This document shows, piece by piece, positions 5,516-22,857 of a DNA stretch of 64,000 bases; position 1 is the stretch's first letter; every line of letters starts with the position of its first letter. This DNA is from Phaeosaccion multiseriatum. Lineage: Eukaryota > Protista > Ochrophyta, other classes. The stretch is taken from positions 124,001-188,000 of the forward strand of contig OZ218955.1 of NCBI GenBank assembly GCA_965112735.1, in the 5' to 3' direction. Both the position numbers and the translations under genes were made by a program. Below the pieces are notes generated by a model. That model did not search any database, was not told where the DNA came from, and saw nothing but the letters and a program-made list of their open reading frames with translations.

Positions 5516-6283
5516 CTGTGTAGGGCAAGGGCAGGGGGCAAGGGGTGGCAGGGGGAAGAAAATAAAGAGGAACAAAAAAAGGGAGGGAGGGAGAGAGCAT
5601 GAGGGAGAGGGGAGAGACGAGGCTTATCGTGGGATGCGGGAGGGCGAAGTGGAGCGACTGCACATGGAGCGCTTTACATGACGCAGAGGGCTCGCCAACT
5701 GCTCAAAGTAACAAGGGCGAATCCTTCTCCTACGCCCCCCCTTCCCCAAACAAGCCACAGGAGCCACGATATACTACCCTCCACTCGAATCTAGACAGCT
5801 TGAGAGACAGTCTGTCTGGCAAGCAGCTGAGCCGCAACAGCATCGCAGCAGCAGCAGGATGCAGTACCATAGCCTTCCCCTTTGCTCAACCCCGAGTTTT
5901 CCACCTACGTGTGTTGGGGGTGTGATCCATCACACAGTGGCCTACTGCCTGCTGCTAGCTACTAGATTGCTGAGGCTTTTACTGTGGAGCAAAGCCCCTG
6001 CCCGCTGCCCGTGCACCTGCTCGTCAACATTTGTTGGGACGTGCCAAGGGACTGACTGACCGCTGAGTTTCAGCTCGTCGGGAGGGATTTTGGGGGCGGA
6101 TTTTAAATTGTTGCAAAGAGTTGCAGACGTCAAAGGACATAAGGCTGGGCTGCAAGGGGAGCAAGAAGAGGAAAGGAAGGGCAAAGACTACGAGATATCA
6201 GCGTCACCTTCTTGGGAGGTTTGCAGGAGAGGCGTCTTCACCGGAAGGCAGGGGGGATTTCATTTCAACAAAGGCAGAGAGAG

Positions 6284-9200
6284 CATGAGGACGAGAGGCA
6301 CGGGCGTCGGACACGGAGACCGAGAGGAGGGAGGCGCGGTGGAGTCCAGTGCAGATGGAGCTACGGGGGGCAGGGGGAAGAGGCGGAGGACTTCTCTGAC
6401 AGAGGTAGGAGGAGGAGGTCCGGGGAGAGGAGGGGAGGAGAGTGAAGATGTGTGCGTTTGCCCTCCCTCTGGGGCGGCTTCAATGCGCCTTGCTATCGGC
6501 CTGTCAAGTCAAACCAACAGCCCCATGCCTTTCAAAATCGTGCACAATTGTGCTTCTCTGGCCCCGTCGTCTGTGATACCCTCTGTTCTCTCCGAACGCT
6601 CCCAGCAGCGGCCAGAGGACGATGACGAAGAGGAGGGGGAGGACCAACAAGAGGGGGAGGGGGAGGAGAGCGAGAGAAGGCACCGACACAGAGACAGCGG
6701 CGCACAGTCCCGCAGGAAGGCAAGGGCCCGCGTCCTTGCGCGGTCTGGAGTGCCGCAAAGCACTTTGGAGACCTCGCCGGGCGGGGGCGGGGGGAGGGCG
6801 CCGGGGAGGGGGAGGAGGGGGAGAGGGGCGAGGAGGGGGAAGCAGCAGGAGGATGAGGATGGTGATGACGAAGACGAGGAGGAAGAGAATGAGGATGAGG
6901 AGACTCCTGCGAGAAGGCGAAGCAAGAGGAGTGGGGCGGGAGTGAATAGGAGGGTCAGGCAAGACGAGGAGGAGGAGGAGGAGGAGGAGGAGGAGGAGGA
7001 GGAGGAGGAGGAGGAGGAGGAGCAGGAGGAGCAGAGCACTACAAGGCCGCGAAGGCGGAGTGGCGGGCGGAAACCCAAGAGAAAGAGTGGAACGGGCAAA
7101 AGGAGAAACAGCAGCAGACATTCCACTGCGAGTGCTGCTGCTCTCGCCGCCGCTGAGGAGGAGGAGGAGGAGGAGGAGGAGGAGGGAGAGGGAGGGAGGA
7201 GGCGGGATCTGAAACTGCGGCGATCGAGCAGGGGGCAGGCGAAAGCTGTGTATGGGGAGTTGGAGGAGGAAGAGGAAGAGGAGAGGGAGGAGGAGGAGGA
7301 GGAGGAGGAGGATGAGGTGGAGGAGGAGGGAGAGCCAGAGGAGGAGGAGGAGGAGGAGGAGGAGGAGGAGGAGGAGGAGGAGGGAGACGACGACGAAGAT
7401 GGCGGAGCCTCCAAGGTAAGCAGATGGATGGCAGTGGATGGTCTTTCCGTTGAGGGCTGTGCCGTGGTGCGTGTGTTTGTTTCCCTCCAGCTCTGATCCA
7501 CCGATCAGTACATTAATATACTGAATTCAAATAATCCCCTCTCCTCACCCCCTCAGCGGTCGGCGCGATCACGAAGGCGGCGCAAGAGGGGCACGAACAC
7601 GGAGCTCCGCAACCTCCTGGGCCTTTCCAGTCAGGAGCAGGCAGCGAAAGACCGACGGAGGCGCACCCTGGGGCAGCTCGAATGGCGCCTCAAGTACAAG
7701 GAGGAGGGAGAGGGGGAGGAGGGGGGGGAGGGAGGAGGGGAGGGCAAGGGGGTGGAGGAGGGGAGGGGGCGCAGCTTGAGGAGCAGGGGAAGCATCAAGG
7801 CGCCGGACGTGCTGAACTACAGCGAAGCCAACAACAACAACGACGAGGAGCAGTACCAGGTGGGTCTCCTTTCTCCTCCCTCCCCTCCCCTCCCCTCTCT
7901 CTCCTCGCGTCTCCTCTCTCCTCTTCCCTCTCTTTTCCTCTCTTCTCTCCGCTGTCCCTGTCCCTGTCTTCTCTCCCTCCACGGGCATCAATGACATCAA
8001 TGACATCAATGACATCAATGACATCAATGATACCAATGACATCAATGGCATCGTGTCACTCACCTCGCCGGCCTTTTCTTCTTCATTTCTTACTATGACT
8101 AACTGACTTACTGCGACTTCCGACTGTGACTTTCTGTGAGTGTTGTCTCGCCGAGAGAGGGAGAGAGCTCATCTGCCCCCCCCTTGCCCCTGTCTCAAGC
8201 AGTACTCCCTTGCCCCTGCCTCAAGCAGTACTCCCTTGCTCCTGCCCCTGTCTCAAGCAGTACTCCCTTGCCCCTGCCCCTGTCTCAAGCAGTACTCCCT
8301 CCGGCGCCGCAAGCGCAGTGAGGGGCGTAACCCCCGCTTCAACATCTCCAGCACGGGGGGCACCACGTATCAGGAGGGGCCATCCCGGGGGGGCGCAGAC
8401 AGCCGCCGCCCCCCGGGGTCCGCCTACGCCGATCTGGAGCGCCGGGCCGCCGCCAACAGCCGCCGGACAACCAACGCGGGAGGGGGAGGGGGGGGCAGCA
8501 GCCACTACTCCAGGAGGGGCGGGGGGGGCAGGGGGGCGAGGCGGCGTAGGCACTATGACTCGAGCAGCGAGAGCAGCGAAGGAGACAGGGGGAGGGCCAT
8601 GGAGTTTGGAGGAGGCATGAGCGGCAGGCAGAGGGACGAAGACGAGGACTTTGCGGGCTATGTGCACAGGAACGCTGCCAAGGAGCTTGCGTCAGTCACG
8701 CCCATCAACGGGATTGACCACGGGAGGGGGGGAGGTGGAGGGGAGGGCGAGGCGGCGGGCGGGGGGGGTAAGAGCAAGACAGGCAGCAGCGGAAGTATCC
8801 GCGACCGGGCCGATCAGCGGGACATTCTGCGGGCAGATGCCAACCCCGTGGATGTGGACTCGAGCATCGGGTGGGAGAGCGTGGGGGGGCTGAGCGGGCA
8901 CGTGAGGCAGCTCAAGGAGATGGTCATGTTGCCCCTCGTGTACCCTGAGGTGTTTAGCAAGTTCAACTCGCAGCCGCCAAGAGGTGCGTGACGAAGAGGG
9001 GGGCTTATGCCACTCAGCTCACCCATTGACTGCCATCCGACCCCCTCACACCAATCCACTGCCTTCTCATCCACTCAGCAATTCATTCACTTGCCGGATC
9101 ACCCACCCATCCACTGCCATCCCCACCCACCCACCCACGCATCCCAGGCATTCTCTTCTCCGGCCCACCCGGGACAGGCAAGACTTTGACGGCGCGTGCC

Positions 9201-17122: not shown

Positions 17123-18616
17123 CTACAGCAGTAAGTCAGAGAAACCGTCGTCCTCTTCCTCCTCCTCCCCCGCGTCCCGCCCTTCGTGGGAGTACTCAGT
17201 GCCAGTGCTGCGAGGAGAGCACTCCCTCCTCCCGTGCGTCCTTTGAGTCCTTTGAGTCCTGTGAGTCCTGTGAGTGCCGTGAGTGCCGGGAGTGCTGTGA
17301 GAGGCAGTACCGAGTGACCCTCCCCTGCCGGAGCTCTTCCTCCTGCTCCTGCTCTTGCTCCTGCTCCTGCTCCTACTTCTGCTGCTCCTTCTGCTGGCGT
17401 AGCTCTTGGCAATGGTCTGTGGTTGCTTTGTTGTGTGCTGTGAGTGCTGTGAGTGCTGTGAGTGCCGGATCTGTGGGCTACTGCGGCCTCCCTCCCTTCG
17501 TCTCTTCCACTTACGCAATACCGTCTCGTCACCACCCCTTTCCCCCCTCTCCGCCGACCGCCCCACCGGCACCGCCACAAGCACTGGCACTTGCCCTGCT
17601 GGCCGGATCACGTTCTCCTCCCCTGCCTCCCCCTCCATGCCCACGCGGCGCCTTCCTCCTCCTCCTCCTTCTCCTCCTCCTCCTCCTCCTCCTCCTCCTC
17701 CTCCTCCTCCTCCTCCTCCTCCTCCTCCTCCTCCTCCTCCTCCTCCTCCTCCTCCTCCTCCTCCTCCTCCTCCTCCTCCTCCTCCTCCTCCTCCTCCTCC
17801 TCCTCCTCCTTCACCTCTTGGAGCCTCGGCCTCTCGGCGCGCCTCCTCCTCCTCCTCCTCCCCCTCCTCCTCTTCCTCATGCTGCTTCTGGAGAGGCTCG
17901 TCGAGGGAGCCCATCTCCTGCTGGAGCGAGTACTTGAGCTCCTCAAGCAACATACCGCGCATCACCCTGTGCAGCCGACGTACCTCCCTCCTCGGCACCG
18001 CCACCACCGCCCTCTGCCCACAGAGGAGCCCTTCGTGTTTGTCGTCACCCTCGTCTGATGATCGTGTCTTTGCTCCCTCCCCCAAGCCTGTCCCTGCTGC
18101 GCCAGGCGATGATCCCCCCTCCTCTTGCGGCCCTCCCCGCCGGGGTGTGGAGAGGGAGGCGGAGGAGGCGGCGTCTCTTCCGCTTGGGCGTTGCGAATGG
18201 GGCTGTGACTGTGCCAAGGCCAAGGCGGCGTTGAGAGTGGCCAGTACCGACACCAGGTTGCTGGCACTCTCTTCTCCCCCCTCCCCTCCTCCTCCTCCTC
18301 CTCCTCCTCCTGCGGCTGCTGTTCCTGGACTTGCTTGATCCGGCGCTGCGGCAGCCGCTGGTGCGAGCACTGTGGGATCGGAGCTCGGAGCAGGTGGGGG
18401 CGCTAGGGGCGGTAGCTGTTCCCTCTCCAGGTCCCACCAAGCAGGCATGGGCAAGGCTGTGCCTCCTGTCCTCTGCTGCCTCGGTGCTAGTTCGGCACTC
18501 GTCGAGTCCGCGGGAATCGAAGCTCTGGCAGGAAGACTTTGCAGCTGCTGCTGCCGCTGCTGCTCGCTGCTTCTCGTGCCATCTCCTCCCAGTGCGGTTT
18601 TCAGCCACCGTATCAT
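17123..18616 (-). CDS. Hypothetical low-complexity protein with a long poly-Gly tract and RS-rich tail
   Basis: Open frame from MIRWLKTALGG, with an amphipathic segment RREVRRLHRVMRGMLLEELKYSLQQEM. No recognisable domain. The (GGA)~50 tract makes the downstream frame uncertain. Confidence 0.45.
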   Translation of the reverse strand: MIRWLKTALGGDGTRSSEQQRQQQLQSLPARASIPADSTSAELAPRQQRTGGTALPMPAWWDLEREQLPPLAPPPAPSSDPTVLAPAAAAAPDQASPGTAAAGGGGGGGGGEGGEESASNLVSVLATLNAALALAQSQPHSQRPSGRDAASSASLSTPRRGGPQEEGGSSPGAAGTGLGEGAKTRSSDEGDDKHEGLLCGQRAVVAVPRREVRRLHRVMRGMLLEELKYSLQQEMGSLDEPLQKQHEEEEEGEEEEEEARREAEAPRGEGGGGGGGGGGGGGGGGGGGGGGGGGGGGGGGGGGGGGGGGGGGGGGEGGGGGRRRVGMEGEAGEENVIRPAGQVPVLVAVPVGRSAERGERGGDETVLRKWKRRREGGRSSPQIRHSQHSQHSQHTTKQPQTIAKSYASRRSSRSRSRSRSKSRSRRKSSGRGGSLGTASHSTPGTHGTHRTHRTQRTQRTHGRRECSPRSTGTEYSHEGRDAGEEEEEDDGFSDLLL

Positions 18617-18813
18617 GGTGGTCTTGCAGAGACAGCGTGAGAACAAGAGGGGGGGCGGAGGAGGAGATTTGATCGAGAGTTGGAGATGGAGAGAAAAAAG
18701 AAAAAGGTTCGAAGCGGATGGCAGCAAAAGGCGCCGATTGATAGGTACGCCGATTGATCCTCCGCGCGCCCTGGCCTCTGCGGCGCAACGCTGGCAGTGG
18801 CAGCAGCGGCAGC

Positions 18814-19174
18814 ATGTCGCCTGCCCCCATACTGCTGGCACTGCATCCACCTCGCTGCTCGAGTACCACCTCGCCGTCCCTCCTTCTCTTCTTCCCGGCA
18901 ACTCTGCCAGCGTTGGACTGGGAACAAGTCCTGACGAGCACGAAAGGCGCCGGAGCCCCCCCCCCCCGGTTGCTGCTGCTGCTGCTGCTGCAGCTTGCCG
19001 CTGCTGCCGCTGCTGCAACCGGGGGGGGGGGGCTCCGGCGCCTTTCGTGCTCGTCAGGACTTGTTCCCAGTCCAACGCTGGCAGGGTTGCCGGGAAGAAG
19101 AGAAGGAGGGACGGCGAGGTGGTACTCGAGCAGCGAGGTGGATGCAGTGCCAGCAGTATGGGGGCAGGCGACAT
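18814..19174. repeat. Inverted repeat A: 160-bp arms, 41-bp CTG-rich spacer
   Basis: 18814-18973 is the reverse complement of 19015-19174, with one mismatch seen (ggcaactctg vs cagggttgcc). Confidence 0.95.
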
Positions 19175-19215
19175 TGGACTGGAGGGTCCTTGAGAAGCAA
19201 ACACACACCCCTCAA

Positions 19216-22200
19216 ATGGGGCCTCAAAGGTGAGGGACGGTGGGAGAGGCGATCGCTGCATGTCGCTATCCTCATCATCGCTGATGACGATAGTCTCCCT
19301 GTCGTCTGCCATTCTCGTCAGTTTCTTGGAGGGCCTGTAACGATGGAAGTGGGGAGGGACCGTCAGGGCAAGCCCTTCGATAACACACACGCCGACACGC
19401 AGATTGACGTCGGCGTGTGTGTTATCGAAGGGCTTGCCCTGACGGTCCCTCCCCACTTCCATCGTTACAGGCCCTCCAAGAAACTGACGAGAATGGCAGA
19501 CGACAGGGAGACTATCGTCATCAGCGATGATGAGGATAGCGACATGCAGCGATCGCCTCTCCGGGCGGGAGAAGGCGGCAGCAGCCGCTCGGGGGCTGCA
19601 TCTGCCAGGTGAGGCAAGAAATGGGGTCTACTTCTCATCTTGCCCTTGCCCTCTGTTGTCTCTTCGATCGATATGCCCCAATTGCCAAAGCCACGTACAA
19701 TTTTGTGATTTTCTCTCTCTCCCTGTCTCTTCTCTCCTTCTGCCCCTCCCCAGCAGCAGCGATGTTGGAGGCACCCCTCCAGCCGGCAAGTGTGGCGAGT
19801 GGAAGCCATCGAACGCCCGTATCGTCTCCAAGGTGCTCTCCATTGGCCCCGGCAAGCTCTTGTCAAACGGCACCCGGTGCTACCCCTTGGTCCTGGGGCG
19901 TCCACTGCGTGCGAACCCGGGAGCAAGCCCTGGGCCCACACGACGGTGCAGGGGGCGGAGCAGCTCGAGGAATGGGGTCGCAACAACCCCGCGGCGAGCG
20001 GCGAGGCCAAGGGGGACAAGTACGCTGAGCTTGTCGTGGGCCCCACCCTGATGGCTTCCCCTGGCATCCCCACGCCGTGTGGACCGACGGATGAGGCCCT
20101 ACTCTTTGTTGGCCACCTCGGCGACTGGGGGAGTGTCACCTGGTGTCGGACTACGTATCGCACCTGTCGTGGGACGAGGGCGAGACTGTCTTCCATGACT
20201 GGCGCCGCGTGAATGATGTTGACAAGGATGTGGTGGTGAACCTCATTCCCGTGCCCGTCTGCGGCGTGGAGGAGAGAAATGACAGAGAGGGAGGGGTTGA
20301 GTACAGGGTGGCTCGACGCAACACCAACCACCTGCCAGAAGACCTGGTAGCCCTTGGCGGCAGGATGCTGCGGCACTTGCTGGCCCTTCTCCAGCTTCAG
20401 GTGGTTGTGGCGCTGGGCCGCACGGCGTTCGTTCGCGAGGCCATCCGCGTGGCAGCGGATGGCCTGCTCCTCCTCCTAACCATCAACCCCTCGGGTTGGT
20501 GGCGCTGGCTCTTGTTGGCTGCTCTGGAGGCTGTGGCGGTGATGCGGCTGGCGCAGCTTCTCAACGAGGCTAATCAAGAGGCCGTCGGGCATGTCGTCCA
20601 AGCACTGGCGGTCACCGCGGGCGCGGAGCAGGCTCTCCAGTTCCAACCCCGCATGCTTCAGAACCGCATCAATCCCATCCCTGAGCCGATGCGCCACCTC
20701 ACCGTCTCCGCCTGCATCAACAGCCTATGCGAGGCAGGACACGTGGACAAGGCCGTCGACCTTCTGTGCGCCCTCTCCGCCGACCAGGTGCCACAGCATC
20801 TCGTCATCTTTTCGAGGCGTTCCTCCGACTGTCAGCTGACACCCCGTCTCATGGAGAAAGTGCTCGGAGTGGTGCACTCGAACGGACGCGTTCACTCGCT
20901 CACCTTCTCCGGCTTGGACCCGCTTGCCTGGTGGAGACTTCTTACCTGGCGGCAAGCCCTCCTCCGCGTGACAAGCCTCTTCATCAGCAAGGGACCAGGA
21001 AGAGTTGGGCACCTCGACTTTGCCCGCCTCAAGACCATTCTTGGCGTCTTGCCCAACCTCACCGACTTGACTGCCCCACTGGACCTTGTTGGGGACCCGC
21101 AACACCAGGTCACCGGGCACGTCAAGGCGGTGTGCAGCGACGAAGGCGATAAGCATGCCCGGCGGGACGCGCTGCTGGCCCTCGTTCCCAATGCTTCCTC
21201 AGTGAGTGTGTGGTCAACCGCAGAGGAGAAGTGTCAGTACGAGCCCCCCTGCGAAGCTGGTGAGTAAAACATGCGTCCACCTTTGGTGTGTGAAGTGTGT
21301 GTGGGTGTGTATGTAGCTGTTTAAGTAGGTGTGTGGGTGGGTGGGTGGGTGGGTGGGTGGGTGGGTGGGTGTGTGTAGCTGTGTAGCCGTGTGTGTGGCT
21401 GTGTGGGTAGGTGTGTGGGTGGGTGGGTGGGTGTGTGTGGGTGGGTGTGTGGGTGGGTGTGTGTGTGTGGGTGGGTGGGTGTGTGTGTGTGGGTGGGTGT
21501 GTGTGTGGGTGGGTGTTTTGTAGGTGTGTTGTGTGACTTTCAGACCATCGTGTCCATTGCTCTTCAAGAAAGAGGGATGTCACCGCCCGGCTGCTGCTCT
21601 TTCTTCCCACTTCTAGTCCCTCATTTCTTTGTAAACTCTTTCTTTCTTACTTCAACTAACTGCTGCACGCCCCACCCCCCCTCGGCCCCTGAACATACGC
21701 CTGGACGCAGTGGCCAGCAAGGGCTACATTTGCGGGACAAACCCGGAGGGGTGCCCGGCAAAGCAGGACCTCCTCAAGGCGAGGAGCAGGGAGGCGGCAA
21801 AGGAAGCACACAGGCAGTGGCCATGTGGCTGCGAGGACGTCGTGTCCATTTATACGCAAGAGCAATGTACGTCAGTCACCGCCCAGCTGCTGCTCTTATT
21901 CTCACTTCGACACACACACACACACACGCGCGCCCACACACACACACATAGCTCTTTCTTTCTTACTTCAACTAACTGCTGCACGCCCCACCCCCCCTCG
22001 GCCCCTGAACGCAGACGGGAAGGCAGCGGCCAGCAAGGGCTACATTTGCCGGACAAACCCGGAGGGGTGCCCGGCAAAGCAGGACCTCCTGCAGGCGAGG
22101 AGCAGGGAGGCGGCAAAGGAAGCACACAGGCAGTGGCCATGCGGCTGCGAGCCACATGGCCACTGCCTGTGTGCATCCTTTGCCGCCTCCCTGCTCCTCG

Positions 22201-22659
22201 CCTTGAGGAGGTCCTGCTTTGCCGGGCATGGACGTCGTGTCCATTTATACGCAAGAGCAATGTACGTCAGTCACCGCCCAGCTGCTGCTCTTTCTTCCCA
22301 CTCCTAGCCCCCCCCCCCCTTTGTTTGTAGCTCTTTCTTACTTCAACTCCTACCTTTTCCTCCCTCTCATGTGCCTTGTTCTTTGCTTGCCAGATCTATC
22401 AGCATCGCGACGACGGAGCCCGATTATCAAACGTGAAACTTTCCTCAGTCTTTCACTCAACGCGCCACAGTTGAAGCGCTTCCGCGTTCGGCTGCTTGGC
22501 CTGATCGGGGCGGCTTCCGATGACGAGGAGACGCGCGCCATACTCGCCAACCAGCATAACCAGCTGCAGGAACGACAGAATGCTGGTACCGTGTTGTCTC
22601 CGCAAGACGAGAGTGACTTCTTCGCTTTGGAGTTAGTTTTCGCGGTCCTGGAGACGTAG
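19216..22659 (+). pseudogene. Frameshifted, rearranged gene: SIM-like N-terminus, UDG-superfamily-like domain, helical/LRR-like region, Cys-rich exon
   Basis: Predicted exons 19216-19229, 19471-19608, 19753-21260, a duplicated Cys-rich exon (~21711-21867 and ~22015-22261) and 22394-22659, all phase-compatible. Two single-G deficits in G-runs (~19895, ~20127) restore LLFVGHLGDWGE..VVVNLIPVP..LQVVVALGRTAF..TINPS. Confidence 0.6.
19243..19562. repeat. Inverted repeat B: 154-bp arms, 12-bp spacer
   Basis: 19243-19396 is the reverse complement of 19409-19562; spacer acgcagattgac; no mismatch found by eye. Confidence 0.95.
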
Positions 22660-22857
22660 GTGACGACCGATCGGCGTCATGCAAGTCGATATCGCGGATC
22701 GTCATTTGAATTGAACAGAACTCTCCTCCTGCCCATCTCAAAGTCACCACTAATAAGGGGAACACATTCAGTATGGCGAAGAAATTGTCCATCCGCTGCC
22801 ATCCTCTCATTCAGCAAATGTGGCTCCGGAAATAGGGCCCCGGAGACACAGCGACAC

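Follow-up and report, generated by a model that had tools for sequence, protein, structure and literature searches.

A young intronic palindrome in a decaying gene duplicate, probably a scar of snap-back repair

A perfect palindrome with arms of 154 nt spans part of the first intron and the beginning of the second exon of a duplicated gene in the window, i.e. the whole 64-kb stretch of Phaeosaccion multiseriatum DNA that was analysed. We consider it likely that the left arm arose recently as a mutational scar, namely a fold-back (snap-back) templated insertion made during repair in intron 1 of a decaying duplicate, and that the hairpin has no selected function. A fresh repair scar is favoured over a self-silencing device because this copy of the gene is dead already and the sister copy, on another chromosome (contig C1), does not carry the insert.

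Results

A repeat search of the window located the two arms at 19243-19396 and 19409-19562, each 154 nt long, 100% complementary and separated by a spacer of 12 nt (19397-19408). The former segment is thus an exact inverted copy of the latter, as the original prediction had it. Perfect arms of this length cannot have arisen by chance. They contain two CGATCG sites in symmetric positions, and the stretch around them (19100-19700) corresponds to C6:143,100-143,700. The left arm (19243-19396), an inserted inverted copy of 19409-19562, lies within intron 1. The right arm (19409-19562, + strand) is the template; it is collinear with, and 99% identical to, C1:6461228-6461000, and comprises the terminal 62 nt of intron 1 together with the initial 92 nt of exon 2. 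Its intronic part includes the pyrimidine tract and the AG at 19469-19470, whereas its exonic part includes the ATG at 19494 and, in translation, the SIM-like ETIVISDDEDSD; the content ascribed earlier to the arm (pyrimidine tract, AG and 92 nt of exon) was therefore accurate. According to the C1 alignment, the last 9 nt of the spacer are ancestral intron that is also present in C1, while the 2-3 nt at its left end (AC or ACG) have no assigned source and constitute filler at the loop.

The host gene copy is read on the + strand. Its exon 1 remnant (19163-19229), alignable to the paralogues in C1 and C16, ends at a donor (AAG/GTGAGG) conserved in all three copies and is followed by intron 1 (19230-19470), which the fold-back insertion has enlarged from ~100 nt, the C1 state, to 241 nt; the locus is ~145 bp longer than it would be with a single arm. 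Exon 2 (19471-19608) was delimited by its frame and translation, with an acceptor (TTACAG/G) conserved in C1 and a donor at 19609 conserved in C1 and C16; from 19472 onwards it translates to PSKKLTRMADDRETIVISDDEDSD.... Intron 2 (19609-19753), whose conservation across the three decaying paralogues is unusually high, leads into exon 3 (19754-21267), encoding an orphan conserved domain and a helical tail and broken by two deletions. The fusion of ATG GGG CCT CAA AG to the AG/G acceptor, from which a protein starting with MGPQR had been deduced, is in frame by inspection, the exons having been translated separately. This N-terminus is nevertheless questionable: it depends on an ATG at 19216 that is present in the window copy alone and reads ACG in C1 and CTG in C16 in the paralogue alignment. 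Because this ATG is restricted to the window copy, exon 1 is probably 5'UTR, with translation starting at the ATG at 19494.

The host protein yielded no match in a Pfam search, no homologue in a word-based search and no relative in a viral contig collection. Its sole matches to PDB sequences were to one PPR-like motif, and an atlas search provided weak F-box/LRR-like leads with scores of 0.82 or lower. An AlphaFold2 model computed on a 3-sequence alignment (pLDDT 37.6) was too poor for fold comparison with the uracil-DNA-glycosylase superfamily.

Within the 67-Mb genome, the arm sequence occurs at two places only, the window locus (C6) and the C1 paralogue, where it is single-copy. The comparison with a copy lacking the additional arm, as proposed with the original prediction, could thus be made: the C1 paralogue, 99% identical at the locus, has one arm and an ordinary intron 1 of ~100 nt, with the G-rich 5' end and C-rich 3' end of a typical short intron, and holds ~15 nt of its own sequence at the position of the arm's insertion. 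At the positions mirroring 19424 and 19447, the left arm shows the two bases specific to the window and not those of C1; it was therefore copied locally and recently, after the C6/C1 split. The inserted arm and its adjacent template show 0 differences, which makes the insertion very young. At the outer junction (19242/19243), we found a 2-nt GG microhomology (19243-19244) and the loss of ~12 nt of C1-type intron sequence. No target-site duplication was found at the palindrome junctions. At the loop, a priming microhomology of 0-2 nt, at most GT/AC, can be proposed. A foldback transposon or MITE was rejected as the source of the arm, which is present at C6 and C1 only, is the gene's own sequence and has junctions without duplication.

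A tract near-identical to C1 (19399-19820; 5 differences in 421 nt) begins exactly at the palindrome spacer. By change-point analysis of the C1 alignment, the difference is 1.2% in 19399-19820 versus 7.8% beyond (2×dlnL = 32.7), and to the left of the palindrome 56/107 columns are identical to C1. That the C1-identical tract starts at the palindrome centre suggests break repair with snap-back synthesis.

Relative to C1, exon 3 has two frame breaks, caused by deletions of 1 nt at 19895 and 4 nt at 20143, neither of which is a homopolymer-length change. Owing to these deletions, the starting frame of exon 3 stops at 20049-20051. The codon differences between the window copy and C1 comprise 35 non-synonymous versus 5 synonymous changes with no third-position excess, and this comparison gave no sign of purifying selection on the window copy. 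In addition, ~70-85 nt of 5' flank common to C1 and C16 are missing from the window copy. Judged by its sequence, the C6 copy is a pseudogene. A functional coding gene with a regulated intron was rejected in view of the frame breaks, the stop and the codon differences. Among the relatives, the C1 paralogue carries a frameshift of its own and evolves without constraint, the C16 paralogue is decayed and devoid of the segment that carries the palindrome, and the intact relatives in C12 and C3 show 37% amino-acid identity.

Within 3.4 kb of the palindrome there are two more fold-backs that are likewise young and share its topology, neither of them mentioned in the original prediction. The first, I1 (18814-18992/18996-19174), has 179-nt arms (96% identity) and a 3-nt spacer; in this case the left arm (18814-18992) was inserted, and the window segments 18765-18814 and 18990-19171 are collinear with a single copy at C1:6464852-6464631. 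Its arms have 1 differing site outside a central CTG/CAG run, and both keep a 12-nt G run alike. The second, I4 (22068-22146/22150-22228), has 79-nt arms (95% identity) and likewise a 3-nt spacer; here the insertion is the right arm (22150-22228), which matches the repeat unit 21752-21830 further upstream at 99% identity. No additional fold-backs of such topology were detected in the rest of the 64-kb window. The C16 paralogue displays an independent fold-back centred on the same donor, which has aged, since its arms are only 95% identical. All three neighbouring fold-backs are single-copy in C1. The comparison of fold-back frequency covers the 64-kb window and 48 kb of paralogue loci.

The predicted RNA fold of 19216-19620 is a full-length stem of -382.4 kcal/mol, compared with -155.6 +/- 6.7 kcal/mol for shuffles of the same segment (native z = -34). 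By this prediction, a transcript running through intron 1 would hide the branch region, the pyrimidine tract, the AG, the start codon and the SIM-like motif in a 154-bp stem. An Rfam search returned only sub-threshold matches of miRNA-precursor shape, e.g. MIR439 with 33 bits versus a threshold of 90; as these matches reflect the hairpin shape, assignment of the hairpin to a known RNA family was rejected.

Discussion

The locus combines an inverted copy of adjacent sequence, a pre-insertion state preserved in C1, and a junction with microhomology and a deletion but without duplication. Local foldback inversions at double-strand breaks (PMC11724301) and snap-back SD-MMEJ (PMC5728401) produce identical topology. 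The event may go back to a break in intron 1, or to synthesis that stalled there; a 3' end running leftward would then have folded back on its own strand, copied 154 nt of it, unwound and been joined to the other end. Beforehand, C1 may have served as the template of this 3' end, because the ~420-nt tract of C1 identity stops precisely at the loop. Conversion and snap-back may have occurred as a single event, or the palindrome may have come first and a later gene conversion been halted at the heterology; either order fits the alignment. If the locus is still transcribed, the 154-bp duplex would hide the acceptor of intron 1 and could feed the RNAi machinery as a by-product.

With the local foldback inversions and snap-back MMEJ events described in yeast (PMC11724301) and Drosophila (PMC5728401, PMC2943611), the palindrome shares the inverted copy beside the junction, the short loop, the microhomology or small deletion at the rejoining and the absence of a target-site duplication. 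The arm is longer, at 154 nt (64-179 nt in the sister events) versus mostly 5-34 bp in the yeast assay, and, unlike the products of break-repair assays, the window palindrome is fixed in the germline of a natural genome and borders a ~420-nt tract of sequence identity with an ectopic paralogue. Chromosome-scale foldback inversions, as found in yeast sae2/mre11 mutants and in cancers (PMC7467729, PMC10622511), likewise involve a 3' end that primes on itself through a hairpin, but these events extend as far as the chromosome end or a second rearrangement, at the cost of the distal arm, whereas in the window synthesis ended at 154 nt and the original flank was rejoined. The palindrome belongs to an already known kind of repair scar, of which it is an ordinary member. 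As a single locus, and a lesion in a pseudogene, it has little weight; as a fully reconstructable natural fold-back insertion, with the states before (C1) and after (C6) present in one genome, it offers a useful case for studying how genomes are shaped by break repair with snap-back synthesis.

It is unlikely that the palindrome is an artefact of assembly or library preparation, in which a chimeric read (an ONT fold-back, a read with a missing SMRTbell adapter or an inverted chimera from MDA) would have entered the consensus while the chromosome has the right arm only, a possibility already raised with the original prediction. Such an artefact would give arms that are 100% identical, as observed here, and the locus is a segmental duplicate beside tandem repeats, hence hard for assemblers. 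Palindromes from fold-back reads and from whole-genome amplification (PMC12870357, PMC6218980) resemble the one in the window in that their inverted arms are perfectly identical and separated by a short spacer or none. However, the fold-back artefacts described in the literature span whole reads, with the axis of the palindrome at the read midpoint, and make up ~0.6% of ONT genomic reads, being nearly absent from HiFi (PMC12870357). Reads of this type turn back once, whereas the window palindrome is internal, measures 154 nt and has collinear sequence on both flanks, the upstream flank being regained after the arm; moreover, its outer junction, with a small deletion and microhomology, is like biological joints. 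The fold-backs of the same shape at the locus and in C16 have aged, given the substitutions that separate their arms, which speaks against an artefact, and the 12-nt G run shared by the I1 arms suggests an accurate consensus. Taken from the assembled sequence, the geometry of the palindrome argues against an assembly chimera.

A functional role in trans appears quite improbable. The dead C6 copy would be transcribed and its 154-bp stem diced to siRNAs that silence C1. The predicted stem is long and perfect, and the arm and C1 agree at every base of 19448-19562 (115 nt, 100% identity), a segment holding the acceptor, the start codon and the SIM-like motif. The genome encodes Piwi/Argonaute (C13), RNase III (C1, C2 and C4) and RdRP (C1); genes of a diatom have been silenced by inverted-repeat constructs (PMC2724275), and brown-algal miRNAs have been proposed to come from intronic hairpins (PMC4513859). 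A gene-derived origin was not seen for the miRNAs of Ectocarpus (PMC4513859). Given the RNAi genes and the 115-nt match to C1, siRNAs may arise from the hairpin. Against this role, the sole possible target, C1, is itself frameshifted and unconstrained, the intact C12 and C3 relatives are far too diverged for targeting, and the Rfam matches are sub-threshold and hairpin-shaped. Transcription of the C6 copy is doubtful owing to the lost 5' flank, selection on the hairpin is not demonstrable because its age is zero, and covariation in the stem is impossible with zero differences between the arms. In intron-spliced hairpin RNA transgenes, reportedly those of Smith et al. 2000 and Wesley et al. 2001, the intron is said to form the loop and to be spliced out. 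Hairpin and intron likewise share a single transcript here, but one arm of the window palindrome is intronic and the stem would bury the acceptor itself. Closer parallels are the hpRNA, endo-siRNA and proto-miRNA loci (Drosophila hpRNAs, PMC10317233; rice pseudogene siRNAs, PMC2708354; plant inverted duplications, PMC3237417), which have in common with the window locus a gene-derived inverted duplication, a long perfect stem, a location in a pseudogene and a near-identical paralogue as candidate target. In contrast to these loci, the window hairpin is a predicted structure of zero evolutionary age, and its candidate target is decaying. We accordingly give little credence to the idea that the C6 copy has become, or is turning into, a hairpin-RNA gene and that fold-backs in dead duplicates provide the alga with siRNA or miRNA genes directed at paralogues. 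Should small RNAs map to the arms, the locus would be a newborn hairpin-RNA gene with an origin known to the base.

Highly improbable is an ancestral palindrome, of which C1 would have lost one arm by centre-deletion while intra-palindrome gene conversion kept the arms in the window identical. Long palindromes are known to undergo both deletion and homogenisation (reviewed in PMC7999016), and C16 is unusable as an outgroup because it does not have the segment. However, intron 1 of C1 has the make-up of a typical short intron with sequence of its own at the arm site, and the single-copy C1 state at three fold-backs would demand three independent precise losses.

Returning to the snap-back scar as the preferred reading, a cis-acting function can hardly be entertained. 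The original prediction had combined a self-silencing, splice-masking structure with a SIM-like start donated to a minus-strand neighbour; the acceptor would indeed be sequestered in the predicted stem and a minus-strand frame is open from 19462 to 17123, but the conserved domain of the gene copy is broken, the insertion is missing from the paralogue and too young to reveal selection, the ATG at 19216 is specific to the window copy, and the minus-strand ORF has neither a coding GC1/2/3 pattern beyond the inverted exon nor a family match. The masking stem stands as a prediction, whereas a silencing function is unsupported, since a cis-silencing device has nothing to regulate in a pseudogene and C1 lacks the arm.

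The minus-strand open frame down to 17123 does exist (17123-19462, 779 aa, containing MADDRETIVISDDEDSD), but the proposed grafting of a SIM-like peptide onto a neighbouring gene found no support. The coding signature of the genome (low GC2, high GC3) is confined to the inverted exon of this ORF, a Pfam search with it gave no match, and the ORF lies in DNA of low complexity, where both strands have several open frames. A real minus-strand neighbour gene gaining a SIM was rejected on these grounds of composition and family. For annotation, the palindrome calls for caution, as it yields both a false N-terminal extension and a false antisense ORF of 779 codons.

The palindrome and its single-armed paralogue

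In the source assembly (67 Mb in 22 contigs, GC roughly 60%), the palindrome in the window copy of the gene (contig C6) consists of two arms of 154 nt each (19243-19396 and 19409-19562), which are 100% complementary and separated by 12 nt. The right arm comprises the final 62 nt of intron 1, with its pyrimidine tract and AG, and the initial 92 nt of exon 2, so that intron 1 holds an exact inverted copy of the acceptor and of the exon start, as the original prediction had stated. The in-frame join of exon 2 to ATG GGG CCT CAA AG was likewise correct by inspection. Exons were translated and searched one by one, exon 2 reading PSKKLTRMADDRETIVISDDEDSD... from 19472.

Elsewhere in the genome the arm sequence was found at one site only (C1:6461064-6461228), where it is single-copy; window 18765-22662 is a segmental duplicate of this C1 region. 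The C1 paralogue has an ordinary intron 1 of ~100 nt, composed of the donor GTGAGGGAC, ~15 nt of G-rich sequence, 9 nt equivalent to the right-hand portion of the spacer in the window, and the single arm. Compared with it, the window lacks ~12-13 nt, which are replaced by the 154-nt inverted copy and 2-3 unexplained bases. The outer junction displays GG microhomology, and no target-site duplication was found at the palindrome junctions. Over the 229 nt rightward from the spacer, C6 and C1 share 99.1% identity, with 19424 and 19447 as the sole differences. At the counterparts of both positions the left arm has the bases of the window and not those of C1, which shows that it was templated by the right arm in the window itself, after C6 and C1 had separated. 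In terms of sequence, the junction anatomy is that of a fold-back (snap-back) templated insertion.

C6 and C1 do not diverge evenly along their length: between the spacer and about 19820 there are 5 differences over 421 nt, whereas the next 1461 nt contain 114 difference columns (2*dlnL = 32.7). To the left of the palindrome, the two copies agree at only 56 of 107 columns. This distribution points to a gene-conversion-like tract beginning exactly at the loop. It would fit a single event, with the C1 paralogue serving as template for the repair of a break in intron 1 and the new strand then snapping back over 154 nt of its own sequence before it was end-joined. It would equally be compatible with two events, the palindrome arising first and a later conversion between C6 and C1 being halted by heterology. 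Under either reading the topology is the same as in local foldback inversions at breaks (PMC11724301) and in snap-back SD-MMEJ (PMC5728401), although the arm is several-fold longer than in these. Most probably, the palindrome is a very young scar that fold-back repair left in a pseudogene, an event of a kind already known, and its main use is as a specimen whose formation can be fully reconstructed.

Decay of the host gene copy

Exon 3 (19754-21267) encodes a conserved domain of ~270 residues and a helical tail. In C1 a single frame spans the domain. In the window copy the domain is spread over three frames by two deletions, one of 1 nt at 19895 and one of 4 nt at 20143, neither of which merely alters the length of a homopolymer. 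The starting frame of window exon 3 meets a stop at 20049-20051, and the C1 tail has its own +1 shift. Codons differing between C6 and C1 comprised 35 non-synonymous and 5 synonymous changes, with no third-position excess. The window copy lacks the 5' flank of 70-85 nt common to C1 and C16, a further decaying copy; leftward from about 19163 it is fused to a unit sitting 3.4 kb further upstream on C1, and its promoter is probably missing. The window copy is thus a dead gene, a pseudogene. C1 has ACG and C16 has CTG in place of ATG 19216, while the donor AAG|GTGAGG is conserved in all three copies, so that exon 1 is probably untranslated, with translation starting at ATG 19494.

Exon 3 substitutions between C6 and C1 are tightly clustered at 19848-19850, 19890-19891 and 19908-19913: at one site three consecutive bases are changed, and at another a 6-nt stretch holds four changes. 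This pattern suggests that several nucleotides were altered at once, by error-prone synthesis or micro-template switches, and not by separate point mutations. A 12-nt in-frame difference was also seen between window 20097 and C1:6460517-6460528, the unit being directly tandem-duplicated in C1 and single in the window.

Alternative explanations

The palindrome could be a source of hairpin RNA, as a by-product or in a nascent role. A basic RNAi toolkit is present in the genome, with one Piwi-domain gene (C13:419594-420865), three RNase III-domain loci (C1:4947333-4947887, C2:3563452-3563787 and C4:3820038-3820199) and one RdRP gene (C1:3767137-3770084), and a 115-nt stretch of the arm is a perfect match to C1. 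Diatom genes have been silenced by inverted repeats (PMC2724275), and intronic hairpins have been proposed as raw material for brown-algal miRNAs (PMC4513859). However, a hairpin-RNA source is a prediction from sequence, and its sole possible target, C1, is itself decaying.

An assembly or read artefact is improbable. Known fold-back artefacts of long reads take up the whole read as a palindrome mirrored at its midpoint; their share is about 0.6% among ONT genomic reads, and they are almost absent from HiFi (PMC12870357). A return to the flank of origin after 154 nt, through a joint with microhomology and a small deletion, is not a feature of these artefacts, and sister fold-backs with diverged arms show that such events have a biological origin in this genome.

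The palindrome belongs to a cluster of fold-backs. Fold-back I1 (18814-18992/18996-19174) lies 68 nt upstream of the palindrome. Its left arm is the inserted copy, as shown by collinearity with C1, and outside a central CTG/CAG run its arms differ at one site, versus about 7% divergence from C1. Both I1 arms contain the opening bases of what remains of the gene's 5' part; the 3.4-kb fusion therefore predates I1. In fold-back I4 (22068-22146/22150-22228), located in the 3' tandem repeat, the inserted arm is the right one, which has 99% identity to the preceding repeat unit. An independent fold-back in C16 (64-nt arms, 95% identical, 18-nt loop) is centred on the same conserved donor and has an inverted exon 1 copy in place of intron 1 and most of exon 2. 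No other non-microsatellite short-spacer palindromes of at least 40 nt were found in the rest of the 64-kb window.

A minus-strand frame (17123..19462), which in the original prediction could graft a SIM-like peptide onto the neighbouring gene, is indeed open, but the coding signature of the genome (GC2 about 0.4-0.5, GC3 about 0.7-0.75) is confined to the inverted exon and no family match was obtained; the surrounding DNA is of low complexity, with several overlapping open frames on both strands. The structural side of the original prediction is sound, RNA folding of the palindrome segment yielding a full stem (-382.4 kcal/mol versus -155.6 +/- 6.7 for shuffles), but its functional side is unsupported: cis self-silencing has no object in a gene copy that is broken and probably without a promoter.

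Gene family and neighbouring repeats

The family comprises five loci in the genome, the decaying trio C1, C6 and C16 and two intact members on C12 (extracted locus L016, 4014-6482, plus strand) and C3 (L017, 4088-6556, minus strand). The 822-codon ORFs of the latter two are 97% identical to one another and 37% to C1, and their proteins contain a duplicated SIM-like acidic motif, IEVCDSADDDE, within a repeated N-terminal region; an NPSGW motif is conserved in the C12, C3, C1 and C6 copies. The family protein had no Pfam domain above threshold and a single PPR-like motif in a PDB sequence search, while an atlas search gave weak leads only and the AlphaFold model was of unusable quality. No homologues outside the genome were detected by word search, nor any relatives in viral contigs.

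The tandem repeat downstream of the gene (window 21579-22300; C1:6455458-6458991; unit ~295-316 nt) has about 2 units in the window versus about 12 on C1, every one of which matches the inverted arm of I4. Window 57088-57197 matches C1:6465395-6465496 in both orientations (87-89%), a further small palindromic element common to the C6 and C1 neighbourhoods. A (TGGG/TG)n-type block (21285-21550), 75-85% identical to blocks on at least 10 other contigs, belongs to a common dispersed simple-repeat family of the genome.

Intron 2 (window 19609-19753; about 8880-9020, minus strand, of the C1 locus piece L013; about 5550-5700, minus strand, of the C16 piece L015) is neither a dispersed repeat nor matched by an Rfam family. 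Among C1, C6 and C16 it is more conserved than the adjoining exon 3 coding sequence (74% to C16), and almost no variation is seen in its opening ~70 nt and closing ~40 nt, C16 included; this conservation could reflect gene conversion or an intronic functional element.
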